A stretch of DNA of 64,000 bases from Octopus sinensis (GCF_006345805.1 NC_043011.1:61578464-61642463), one strand, 5' to 3'. Positions 938 through 63,168 are shown, counted from the stretch's first letter. Program-made: numbers and translations. Notes: generated from the letters alone by a model not told the origin.

Positions 938-974
938 CTGCGGTGAGAAGACACAGAAATAAAATAAATTTCAT
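938..974 (-). CDS. Gene A, coding exon 1 (signal peptide MKFILFLCLLTA-G) of the six-Cys GPI-type family; the rest of the gene runs off the left edge
   Basis: ATG at 974, 12 codons + G, then a GCAG|GTAAGT donor. Near-identical to exon 1 of gene B (12479-12515) inside a duplicated block. Confidence 0.8.
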
Positions 975-1074
975 CGTAGATTTTCGTGTTCCAGCAACGC
1001 CTGCCCAAGTGATGGACACTTCCATGAAAGTGTGTCGCATATAGTTCGATGTAACAGCTGTTTATTTACACGTA

Positions 1075-1082
1075 TTTATATA
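1075..1082 (-). promoter_or_regulatory. Candidate TATA box (TATATAAA) of gene A
   Basis: Same position relative to the ATG as in gene B. Confidence 0.35.
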
Positions 1083-1479
1083 TAAATGTATATGTGAATA
1101 TATACATAGATCAGTATACATTGATCTGAACGGTATGATTGTTTATTATTTTTATATAAAGTCATAAATAATCAGTGAAATATCCAGTATGATAAAAAGT
1201 TTCATTTAATCGATGGAAATCCTTATATGACAACAATTGTTTCACAGCTTAATAAAACATGCGTAGATAATTTATTTTATTATATCTTATAACAAGTAAA
1301 TTGTTTATTGAAATGTCTGCCCTAATATATTGAAAATAATGCAAACATTGAGAGATCTCATCTGGTTCGAAAAGTCCATGTTAAGAAATAATCTCTTTTA
1401 ATAATGCAAGCAACATATTATATATGTGTGTGAATATCCCCCCCCCCATATATATATATATATATATATGTATATATAT

Positions 1480-59792: not shown

Positions 59793-60583
59793 CACGTCGT
59801 CTGCCACAGGATATCAATATGATCTGCTTCTATTTACCAAAAGGGTTTTATAAAATTTCTCAAACCAGAAAACTGAAATATTTTGTGTGGTGGTATATAG
59901 GTACATAATACATGTAATTATATTACAATGACGTGATATAAGTTATTTCATAGTAACGCAAAATGCTCAGATTGGTTTGCTATGAAGGCTTTGAGCGGAT
60001 GTTATTCATTATTTGACAATATCTCCTCATTGTATAATATATTCTTTATGTTTTCAGATTTATGGAGAATTATTATAAATTTTGATTTGTAATATATAAG
60101 ATGCCAAAAAGCCTTTCCGGTGAAAACATTGCTGGAATCGTTCAAGAACTCACGGAAAATGAACTACCGGAAAGGAGTGAACACTCAGATGCTTTAGATA
60201 CAAATTATGTAGCAAATACCAGTGGAACTAATACCAGTGAGGCTAGATCTACTGACGAAGATGAACAATTAGTTGCTCGAGGTCGTAAGAGACAACGCAG
60301 TTCTCCGGCACCAACTGCATTGACATCTAATACTTATACCTGATATATATAGATGTTTCACCAAATATATATCCTGGCAGGTACTATGATACGAGTTAAT
60401 TCGTATCATTGGGCAAATAAAAAGTGTCTTTAGTGTTTCTACAACACACTCACAATGTTAGTTCCAGACACTAGTTCATTTTAAGCGTGTTACAATAAAG
60501 TAGACCTCTACGAGTATGTTCGTACCTTGCAAAATTGTATAGATTGCTAACTATGAGATTACTCGCAGTTGGCAGTCAACGTG
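59793..60583 (+). mobile_element. Non-autonomous, internally deleted piggyBac-like element
   Basis: TTAA at 59789-59792 and 60584-60587; 14-bp TIR CACGTCGTCTGCCA / TGGCAGTCAACGTG (2 mismatches); subterminal palindrome TGATACGAGTTAATTCGTATCA; acidic 80 aa ORF (60101-60343) like a piggyBac transposase N-terminus. Confidence 0.8.
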
Positions 60584-60813
60584 TTAACCTGTCATTTTAA
60601 CACTAATTACAGTAATATATTACATTATAACTAAAGGGGATGAGCATTATTTTGCGCTGTCATTACAAAAAAAATCAATAATGCAAATATATTATATAAA
60701 TATAAATGCTGTGTCATATTCTGAAAGTGAATTTGTAACGGAAAAAATATTGGTTATATTTGTATAAAGAGTCTCACATCAGATATATTTCTTTCAGTTG
60801 ACTTTGAATTCCC

Positions 60814-60914
60814 TCACACCAATATCGGTAGAATAAGAACTGGTAATATACTGTGTGTGGGTGTAAAACGAGTCACAGCACCACTATGGGATTTGGTTTT
60901 TGGCGCGGCTGTGG
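60814..60914 (-). CDS. Gene F exon 4, coding part (GPI-type signal)
   Basis: ttattccag acceptor; KSHSGA followed by ILPVLILPILV*. Confidence 0.85.
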
Positions 60915-63168
60915 CTGGAATAAATATGAAATATGGTGTTTATTATGGAATAATTCAGTTCTTTTTGTCTTGGTGTTGGATCGGGGACGTGCTTCAGCAT
61001 TATCTTCAAACTATAGTACAAGAAATTGACTCCACTATTTATAATTTTTCAAAGTCTGATAAATATTCCATCAGTCTCCTTCGCCGAGTTACTTTCTTAA
61101 AGAGACATAATCAAAACGGGATTGATTTTCAAAGCGTTCAAGGAGAAACCCAAGACACGCACGCTCATACGTATATACATATGTAGCTACACTCATACAT
61201 CCACGCGCACGCACATATACATACAATTTCCGTCCAGCAAATTGATTCACGGCACATAATTTGACACGGGGCTACAGTAAAGGGTACATATCCAAGGTGT
61301 CATGTTGTGAGACTGACACAGGAACTTCAGTGCTGCTAAACGATCCACACAGCCATGAAAGCATCTAAGAGTTTTCACAAAGTATTTCAATCTAACGTTC
61401 TCGCATGATAAAGATAAAGAAGTTGACTCTGAAAAAGTTTCGGAGTCACTTTTTTAGTTTCCATTTCACCACCTTTGTCATGTTCAGCGATTAAATTGAT
61501 TACCAATTCAATTCCGGTGTTGATTAAGCCGAATTAAAATATTCCATTACTGTATTGGCACTTAAATATAACAAATCATATAAGGAATTTAGGTCTCTAC
61601 TTAGTGAGAATGAATAGAACGATAAAATTTTAATACTAAACAGGTATTTTGATATATATTTTGTTGTAGACTTTATGAGCGTCATAGGTTTTGGAACAGC
61701 CATTACGGTGCGACGCGTTTGCCATCGTTAATTCGAAACTGACTAAATTGACAACAGACGTTTAAATGTTTCTCTCGTTCTGTCCCTCTATCCGTAAAGA
61801 TATGTTCGCATATGTGTGTGTGCGTGTGTGAGTGTATGCGTGTGTGTGAGAATATTTTTCTTAACGCATGCGTGTGGGAAGGTGTTTACATCAGTCGTGT
61901 TCAATTGTTGATTGTAACGTCTCTATCCCAATCCTTCTTTCGGGCTTCCTATTTGTAAATATATGTTTCTGCTTAGGCGCATTTCATACCTGCGTGCACA
62001 TGTATGTGTCTGAATATTCTATTCGTCTTCAGTGTCTAAATGTATTGTCGCCAAACTTTGTTAAATGTCCAGCCAGCTGTGGTGAAGCGACACCGTCGAA
62101 ACAGCGGCGTCTATTGGTTTCGTTCAGAGATTTTTATGTCATCTTAATGTCATCTAAATATAAAATCGATGTCAGTTGGGTATATTCTCTCATCTAAAAA
62201 TTGACAGAAGTAATTATCGCTTAGAAATTAAGTCGATAAATGGAATCTGATAATAAGATTATATATTTATATCTTACGAGCGCAGTCATTGTTCACATAT
62301 TCGTCAAGGTACTCATTAACACAATACCAGTGTTTTTTGGCAACACATAATTCATATTCGTAATAAAATCTGAAAAGCAAATACAAAATCAGTGGATTAT
62401 GTTCTAGGAGAGAAGACTTAATATAACTGGCAATAAGTACACTACACCCATCCGCTGCCACTTGCTACCTTATATGGCGCGGAAATAGGTATCATGTTTT
62501 CAGGAATTATTTTTGGTGCTTACATAATTGCAATCGGATGTTAAAAGAGTTGACAATCACTTCCTTCCCAACGATCTCTCAACGAAAAAATCAAAGACAA
62601 GACGGCTGGAGGAAGGGCAGATTGCATCAGCATCGATTTCTACTCATTGAAGGAAGAAATACTTCACTTAAAACTACTATCCTTCAATTTTGGAAATATT
62701 TTGCGCTCTAAATGTGCTTTAAATAAATTTGATTTATGTTTATGCTGGAGTTTAGGTTATCTGTGTATTTGGTAATCTTCGATAATGACATTGGATGTCA
62801 TATACAGATCGTCGACCTTGTTTGTCCGGTTTGCAAACAAATCTTATTGTGGTTGACATTTGTTATTCATTTTTATACTTATATATCACTGAAAAAATTC
62901 TAGAGTATTTAGTTTGAGTCACACCACCAAACAATCTTTTGTTGAGTACCGATGCGAAAAAATATTTATAATTGACATTGAATTCTATCGACGTTTATAA
63001 AACTTAGAATTAAACATAATTATTACATTAATAAAATTAGCTATAAGATAAATAAAAAGGTTACGTACTGACAGTTTTTAGGACCTTTGATTCCTTTGTC
63101 ATATTTCACGATGTGAGGGCAAACGACATGGGGCGCACATACTCTGACCCGCAGTTCTCTATCTTTCA
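60814..63168 (-). CDS. Gene F, partial (exons 2-4; 5' exon(s) lie beyond the right edge), six-cysteine GPI-type protein, closest paralogue of gene E
   Basis: join(63168-63069, 62369-62278, 60914-60814): xKDRELRVRVCAPHVVCPHIVKYDKGIKGPKNCQFYYEYELCVAKKHWYCVNEYLDEYVNNDCAPTAAPKTKSHSGAVTRFTPTHSILPVLILPILV*. Confidence 0.85.
62278..62369 (-). CDS. Gene F exon 3
   Basis: ttgcttttcag acceptor, gtaaga donor, 92 nt; 17/30 aa identical to gene E exon 3 (manual count). Confidence 0.88.
63069..63168 (-). CDS. Gene F exon 2
   Basis: tatattag acceptor, gtacgt donor, 100 nt, CAPHVVCP...NC. Confidence 0.85.

Follow-up and report, generated by a model that had tools for sequence, protein, structure and literature searches.

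A single-cluster tandem array of octopus genes encoding small, probably GPI-tethered proteins with a six-cysteine domain

What is encoded by a series of short, widely spaced exons in the genome of Octopus sinensis, and to which protein family do they belong? The exons lie in a stretch of 64,000 nucleotides (C15:61,578,464-61,642,463, in the 2.72-Gb assembly of 13,516 contigs; hereafter the window), where an original prediction had placed a cluster of paralogous genes, A to F, for small secreted proteins with six cysteines, probably anchored by glycosylphosphatidylinositol (GPI). The window is the middle part of a longer tandem array, in which genes B to E are complete and genes A and F are cut by the window ends. 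We think it probable that this is a diversified, lineage-restricted array of secretory six-cysteine helical proteins, most of them GPI-tethered, which serve in binding or recognition at the cell surface.

The exon models were rebuilt from motif and splice-aware scans in all six frames, without the coordinates of the original prediction. The genes in the window share one architecture: an exon of 37 nt, one of 94, 97 or 100 nt, one of 89 or 92 nt, and a terminal exon, joined by GT-AG introns in phases 1/2/1 and free of internal stops. The splice contexts are conserved among the copies as well (exon 2 tgcag/G.../gtacgt; exon 3 gcag/RCG...G/gtaagat). The encoded proteins of about 103-117 aa (preproteins of about 100-120 aa over the array) have a hydrophobic N-terminus and a Cys domain of about 55 residues, divided over two exons, with the spacing C-x5-C-P-x15-18-C-x8-C-x7/8-C-x11-13-C; in an alignment of 16 sequences no column is invariant except those of the six Cys and of one Pro. 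Exons of 37 nt combining an ATG, a hydrophobic stretch and GTRAG occur five times in 128 kb (both strands), and four of the five lie upstream, on the same strand, of an exon with C-x5-C-P...C, the later exons of gene A being located beyond the window start. Exons of 89 or 92 nt with C-x7-C-x11/12-C likewise number five in the window. In 40 simulated sequences with the dinucleotide composition of the window, the three exon scanners, which gave 5, 5 and 5 matches in the real DNA, gave means of 0.07, 0.03 and 0.00. No promoter motif common to the regions upstream of exon 1 was found beyond GAAWAT before the ATG, apart from a conversion-like tract in genes A and B that is described below. The architecture, phases and splice sites of the original prediction were thus recovered independently, down to the same outer limits (938 and 63168), with two amendments. 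The spacing C-x8-C-x7-C-x11/12-C is as predicted, but its first Cys is C3, which is encoded at the end of exon 2 and not in the 89/92-nt exon; and of the four genes given as complete, B, C and D were so, whereas the model of gene E lacked a micro-exon of 36 nt.

A profile built from five window proteins found five RefSeq 'uncharacterized proteins' of Octopus bimaculoides, so that the family was already represented in the databases. These are the orthologs of gene D (P0001, LOC106874733), gene E (P0004, LOC128249877) and gene F (P0003), and of two array genes outside the window (P0002 and P0005); a further protein, P0127 (LOC128249871), is the ortholog of gene Y (C15:61.522 Mb). Orthologs are therefore available for D, E and F in the window and for G, H and Y outside it, with the same exon junctions. 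Identity amounts to 75% for D, 70% for E, 66% for F, 84% for G and 54% for H, and all Cys as well as the Pro after C2 are kept. The O. bimaculoides genes carry Gnomon isoform models. Together with the scanner counts, the one-to-one orthologs of D, E and F bear out the proposal that the paralogous genes are real. The orthologs also served to correct the models: P0001 confirmed the terminal exon of gene D, and 13 extra residues of P0004 between signal peptide and Cys domain led to the micro-exon of gene E, which has the context tttaaattatag/.../gtacgtaa, follows a strong polypyrimidine tract and keeps phase 1. Two further mini-exons past the window end, upstream of exon 2 of gene F, match N-terminal segments of P0002. 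From these matches, genes E to H appear to contain one to three extra mini-exons between signal peptide and Cys domain, and the isoform models X1 and X2 of O. bimaculoides hint at alternative splicing in this group.

When 170 kb of flanking DNA were scanned, the array was found to comprise at least 11 genes over about 210 kb, from 61.52 to beyond 61.73 Mb of C15, in the order Y(+), Z(+), A(-), B(-), C(+), D(-), E(-), F(-), G(-), H(-) and I(+); the predicted cluster of six is accordingly correct for the window and too small for the array. The genes fall into three subtypes. Y, Z and I have an exon 3 of 98 nt with C4-x8-C5-x13-C6; A to D share CP[DE]xW...[YF]P; and E to H are marked by [FY]YYEYELC and by the extra small exons, whose product is a charged helix following the signal peptide. 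When the whole genome was searched at exon level with domains of the C, E and B types, the matches lay at C15 61.52-61.73 Mb, noise and a few divergent copies aside, and with the exception of those copies the family is confined to this one cluster in the 2.72-Gb genome. The divergent copies are three exon-2-like loci (L006, L009 and L003) with proper AG and GT sites; they lack C1, read AVTICPDSIKKYPVRRPDRHYC, and are 63% identical to the core of gene C exon 2. From their sequences, a wider superfamily of greater divergence may exist at a distance of about 3 Mb.

Does the family belong to any that has been described? Searches of 14 proteins against Pfam (24,736 families, E up to 10) gave nothing meaningful, and the family profile matched no PDB sequence at E up to 10. 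A HMMER profile run against 1.84 billion cluster representatives found no homolog outside Octopus, and word-indexed searches of 5.8 billion proteins gave O. bimaculoides matches only. One extra match among the representatives, P0006, is a repetitive junk open reading frame (ORF) in which C-x5-C-P is coincidental. Nothing relevant was found in the literature on the LOC identifiers, on octopus GPI-anchored or cysteine-rich families, or on cephalopod-restricted secreted families. As far as searched, the family thus appears to be restricted to Octopus and matches no described family, and the lineage-specific tandem expansion that had been proposed agrees with both the single cluster and the taxonomic range. 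AlphaFold2 predicts an all-alpha structure for the F-type ortholog, with a mean predicted local distance difference test score (pLDDT) of 79 and values of 86-92 over the Cys domain; helices are predicted at residues 2-21, 32-42, 47-64 and 73-78, the three main ones in the Cys domain. The D-type model is all-alpha as well, with two helices and a mean pLDDT of 71.

These models exclude the Ly6/three-finger fold, since they contain helices only, and neither UPAR_LY6 nor Toxin_TOLIP matched in Pfam at E up to 10. The same search gave no match to saposin, GDNF-receptor, C-type lectin, ShK, defensin or attractin, and the earlier judgement that the Cys spacing lies outside Ly6, lectin, ShK, defensin and attractin is thereby upheld. 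In their organization the octopus proteins resemble the Ly6/uPAR family (CD59, Lynx1, Bouncer/SPACA4), which also combines a signal peptide, one small disulfide-rich domain and a GPI-type tail, and which is likewise encoded in tandem gene clusters and diversifies rapidly. However, the Ly6 fold is all-beta, and its 8-10 Cys include C-x2-C on the N-terminal side and CC-x4-CN on the C-terminal side, whereas the octopus family has six Cys, no CC pair and none of the Ly6 motifs. Helical bundles of about 40-60 residues with three disulfides are known among diversified recognition molecules, namely the Euplotes pheromones, of which membrane-bound isoforms also exist, and Aplysia attractin. Those molecules are soluble, and no similarity in sequence, spacing or profile to the octopus family was detected.

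The closest known scaffold, with weak support, is the N-domain of the repulsive guidance molecules (RGM proteins; RGM_N, PF06535). This lead was absent from the original prediction, which did not recognise the family; the profile and structure searches gave no significant match. RGM proteins carry a GPI anchor, and their N-domain, a bundle of three helices and three disulfides, binds its ligands through an RG[DN] loop, a Leu pivot and a His on alpha-3, after C5 (PMC7354924). The octopus domain could thus be a remote, stand-alone and GPI-anchored RGM_N homolog, binding TGF-beta/BMP/GDF ligands as co-receptor or decoy, which we consider unlikely. The likeness is that of a small all-alpha domain, with three helices in RGM_N and three main helices predicted in the octopus family; on the RGM side the parent proteins are GPI-anchored (human RGMA/B/C; PDB 4ui1, 4uhz, 4uhy, 7ndg). 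The top PDB match of the F-type model in Foldseek is the N-domain of human RGMC in complex with BMP2 (4ui1_C; 71 columns, TM 0.42/0.52, the latter target-normalised), but at E = 5.9 and a probability of 0.2; the D-type model gave noise only and did not match RGM. RGM_N has six Cys in the same order, and its central C-x8-C-x7-C is identical to that of genes A to H. The full spacing in PDB chains and octopus RGM is C-x4-C-x22-C-x8-C-x7-C-x21-C, so that the outer spacings differ (x5 against x4, x16-18 against x22, x11-13 against x21) and the C5-C6 segment of the octopus family is 9-10 residues shorter. Gene Z shares F-C-x-x-L-R-x-Y-x-x-C with RGMB (FCPRLRMYKEC and FCKALRAYAGC), and RGM_N is its best match among the 24,736 Pfam families (E = 0.059), yet the score of 14.1 bits lies below the gathering cut-off of 24.2, and the Pfam RGM_N model matched no cluster exon in a genome search. 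Alignment of RGM_N with the family in hhalign scored 15.3-15.4 (P = 0.016-0.019, hhalign probability <3%). This score was reached by 4 of 500 column-shuffled controls and by 23-24 of 500 when the Cys columns were held fixed, so the signal consists essentially of spacing; it was not raised by enlarging the family profile from 10 to 16 sequences, and the RGM_N profile was itself shallow, with vertebrate RGMB alone among the matches listed. The ligand-binding determinants after C5 are absent, the family reading for example VNEYLDEY there, and nothing follows the Cys domain, neither the GDPH autocleavage/vWD-like region nor RGM_C. The canonical octopus RGM (L015, on C2), which keeps the vertebrate Cys spacing exactly, has RGM_N, the GDPH site and the downstream part in a single long exon, whereas in the present family a phase-2 intron interrupts the domain after C3. 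As thresholds, outer spacings, binding motif, context and intron structure all disagree, we do not place the family in RGM_N, and we regard true homology as improbable.

The manner of membrane attachment has an alternative of its own. The N-terminal hydrophobic stretch is 11-12 residues long, with cleavage-like small residues at -3/-1 in A to D (TAG, VGVA, VGAA), and N-x-T sequons occur in genes B and D. After C6 the proteins continue for 31-42 residues and end. In most members a linker of Pro, Ser, Thr and Lys, about 10 residues long, leads to clustered small residues (A-S, S-G-A or S-S-A), and a spacer of about eight residues separates these from the hydrophobic end. The tails of A, B, E, F and of the G and H orthologs fit the GPI rule, with 11-14 hydrophobic residues at the C-terminus. 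Those of E to H are ILPILILPILV-like, with 11-12 residues and two prolines; a membrane-spanning helix would need a longer stretch with less tendency to break, and these tails are therefore read as typical GPI signals. The tail could instead fix the protein as a short transmembrane segment or tail anchor, or be cut off as the propeptide of a soluble pheromone-like, antimicrobial or salivary-gland peptide, an explanation that we rate as possible but of low probability. In gene D and its ortholog, 15 hydrophobic residues are followed by 6-8 polar ones (...WFWDSEAIE); the tail of gene C is weakly hydrophobic; and P0127 has the signal peptide and the six-Cys domain but ends in NEDRQRHRG, its hydrophobic tail being absent. 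No equivalent of the P0127 terminal exon was found in the O. sinensis genome, where gene Z has a candidate for an anchor-type exon. Near-neutral divergence on a fixed Cys frame also resembles secreted toxin and pheromone families, and the tandem expansion would likewise suit effector peptides that are secreted. Against this stand the tails of A, B and E to H, which are C-terminal, uncharged and 11-14 residues long, with small residues at the right distance and, in E to H, the two prolines, which is the classical GPI layout. Moreover, the terminal exon is homologous across subtypes and conserved between species (S-x-A-S...TS[YF] in A to C; [HS][AS][AS]..F.SPY in E to H), which would be unexpected of a disposable propeptide. 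From the polar end of gene D and the tail-less P0127 it follows that a GPI anchor need not apply to every member, and the predicted GPI signature without cytoplasmic tail is thus retained for A, B, E and F. The gene D product could be a single-pass anchor, and some members may be soluble. That the exons are chance combinations of ORFs and splice sites, or decaying relics of pseudogenes without function, is highly improbable. The exact proteins are absent from the searched collection and dN/dS is high, as such an origin would have it, but the ratio lies below 1, the scanners found 5/5/5 exons against about none expected, splice contexts, phases and six Cys are conserved in 16 sequences, and intact one-to-one orthologs with Gnomon isoform models exist in a second species; the counts, the conservation and the orthologs effectively refute this reading.

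We return to GPI-tethered recognition proteins, and to how the family has evolved. E and F arose by tandem duplication, and their introns can still be aligned; the exons of the two are 69-77% identical, compared with 70-80% in the flanking 150 nt of intron. By the Nei-Gojobori method the ratio of nonsynonymous to synonymous substitution (dN/dS) is about 0.7 for E/F and about 0.6 for pairs of B, C and D, where synonymous divergence is near saturation and makes the ratio rough. On these comparisons the scaffold is fixed while the surfaces diverge near the neutral rate, and from this combination binding or recognition modules at the cell surface would be the most likely role. The exon 1 signal peptide would direct the preprotein into the secretory pathway, where the Cys domain would fold into a compact bundle of helices cross-linked by three disulfides. 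For most members, replacement of the C-terminal signal by a GPI anchor would then tether the mature domain, of about 65-85 aa and with a short linker, to the outer leaflet of the plasma membrane; at least one member may be soluble. The array would in this way supply diversified binding surfaces, as co-receptor, decoy or ligand. The chemosensory, immune or gamete functions put forward in the original prediction are conjectural. Several points weigh against this proposal, besides the roughness of dN/dS and the atypical tails of gene D, gene C and P0127. The signal-peptide and GPI readings are rule-based, and E to H have poor canonical cleavage sites after a hydrophobic stretch of 12 residues. 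The AlphaFold2 models were built on alignments of five sequences. None of eight spliced proteins has an exact match in a collection of 15 billion proteins; the conserved architecture is therefore all that carries the models of A, B and C, whose junctions are predicted by paralogy.

The coordinates are collected in Table 1. Terminal exons were the most difficult to recognize, and a strict filter recovered only that of gene B. The terminal exon of gene C is the least certain, being identified solely by the S-x-A-S...TS[YF] motif common to A and B. In gene D, a first scan within 2.5 kb found nothing, and the exon was located 6.5 kb downstream because a LINE-like (long interspersed nuclear element-like) ORF fragment and a (CATA)n microsatellite array intervene. 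The gene D start is probably 9 nt further upstream than the conserved 37-nt unit (MSKMTH..., as in P0001).

Table 1. Positions of exon models, related loci and repeats; numbering is that of the window unless another locus is given.
Feature	Position	Strand	Description
Gene A exon 1	938-974	-	MKFILFLCLLTA + 1 nt; 37-nt signal-peptide exon scan
Gene A later exons (locus L011, upstream of window)	exon 2 7751-7847; exon 3 3214-3302; exon 4 candidate 1147-1250		flank scan
Gene B exon 1	12479-12515	-	signal peptide, 37 nt; donor gtaagt
Gene B exon 2	9737-9836	-	100 nt; C-x5-C-P...C
Gene B exon 3	9053-9141	-	89 nt; C-x7-C-x11-C
Gene B terminal exon	8440-8537	-	APRPKESRASLGFMTSYDILLITILLMMMCCF, then stop; linker, small residues, 14-residue hydrophobic end
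Gene C exon 1	13817-13853	+	signal-peptide exon scan
Gene C exon 2	17081-17174	+	94 nt; Cys-motif scan
Gene C exon 3	19708-19796	+	89 nt; Cys-motif scan
Gene C terminal exon	23140-23231	+	candidate; weakly hydrophobic tail
Gene D exon 1	36536-36581 (conserved 37-nt unit 36536-36572)	-	MSKMTHFLCLSLFIV...; ortholog P0001
Gene D exon 2	34750-34843	-	94 nt; NIT sequon inside
Gene D exon 3	32945-33033	-	89 nt; Cys-motif scan
Gene D terminal exon	26276-26394	-	hydrophobic segment, then DSEAIE and stop; confirmed by P0001
Gene E exon 1	53940-53976	-	signal-peptide exon scan
Gene E micro-exon	47259-47294	-	36 nt, LNRITEQKKLFEQ; phase 1 to phase 1; donor gtacgt; matches P0004 LKRIKQKKELFEQ
Gene E Cys exon a	45045-45141	-	97 nt; Cys-motif scan
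Gene E Cys exon b	44206-44297	-	92 nt; YYYEYELC...
Gene E terminal exon	42757-42848	-	...KSHASTCFMSPYTTLPILILPILV, then stop
Gene F Cys exon a	63069-63168	-	100 nt; alternative AG sites at 5' edge; upstream exons beyond window end
Gene F Cys exon b	62278-62369	-	92 nt; Cys-motif scan
Gene F terminal exon	60814-60914	-	stop included, ...KSHSGAVTRFTPTHSILPVLILPILV
Mini-exons past window end	L012 9925-9963; L014 8903-8935	-	KSIEEQQRYYKSM; ISLWPCWDAHW; match P0002 N-terminal segments
Divergent exon-2-like loci	L006 C15:64.463 Mb; L009 C15:64.588 Mb; L003 unplaced scaffold C11551 (each around 1500-1600)		C1 absent
Canonical octopus RGM (L015)	C2:164,242,613-164,242,819	+	RGM_N
A/B tract	gene A 228-1316; gene B 11769-12857		1.1 kb
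SINE-like repeat copies	497-737, 12040-12280, 22314-22515, 25299-25540, 45897-46067, 49018-49249, 49272-49504, 63335-63498		about 235 bp
Second repeat	17528-17884, 26447-26811, 49674-49996		about 360 bp
(CATA)n microsatellite	27278-30438		gene D intron 3
LINE-like ORF fragment	30796-32121	+	gene D intron 3
Non-LTR retrotransposon ORF2	55673-58678	-	1001-aa ORF

The surrounding DNA is AT-rich (GC content 0.30-0.39) and dense in microsatellites and retroelements. A tract of 1.1 kb is 97% identical between genes A and B and reaches from the promoter through exon 1 into the first part of intron 1, including an insert of a repeat that resembles a short interspersed nuclear element (SINE); outside the tract the two genes have only about 30% protein identity. 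On this pattern the tract looks like the product of a recent gene conversion, or of a patch duplication, that was limited to the 5' module. The SINE-like repeat is present in at least eight copies in the window, 84-94% identical, and a second repeat in three places. The (CATA)n array, of about 789 copies over 3.2 kb with 91% matches, adjoins the LINE-like ORF fragment in intron 3 of gene D. Between exon 1 of gene E and the last exon of gene F lies an ORF without interruption that matches Pfam Exo_endo_phos, Exo_endo_phos_2 and RVT_1; with its APE-type endonuclease and reverse-transcriptase domains, it is an intact-looking ORF2 of a non-long-terminal-repeat (non-LTR) retrotransposon.

In kind, the array is no major surprise, as small GPI-anchored Cys-rich families are common and members were already in RefSeq. 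The analysis adds precise models of the genes, an alignment of the family, a sufficiently confident prediction of the fold and, as a specific hypothesis, an RGM_N-like scaffold. It is rather doubtful that the array represents a stand-alone, octopus-specific derivative of RGM_N, diversified into mini-receptors or decoys that are GPI-tethered, or in some cases soluble, and bind ligands of the TGF-beta superfamily or of other cystine-knot types, or else a new helical disulfide fold for lineage-specific surface recognition; the RGM_N derivative, if true, would be a previously unseen use of RGM_N outside the RGM architecture. Cephalopod genomes contain many lineage-restricted genes, among which the present array is a clean case, compact, with three subtypes and a likely membrane tether. 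A fixed six-Cys scaffold, here predicted to be helical, with rapid diversification of the surface is the genetic signature of recognition systems, as in immunity, gamete or cell-cell recognition, or receptor accessory proteins.

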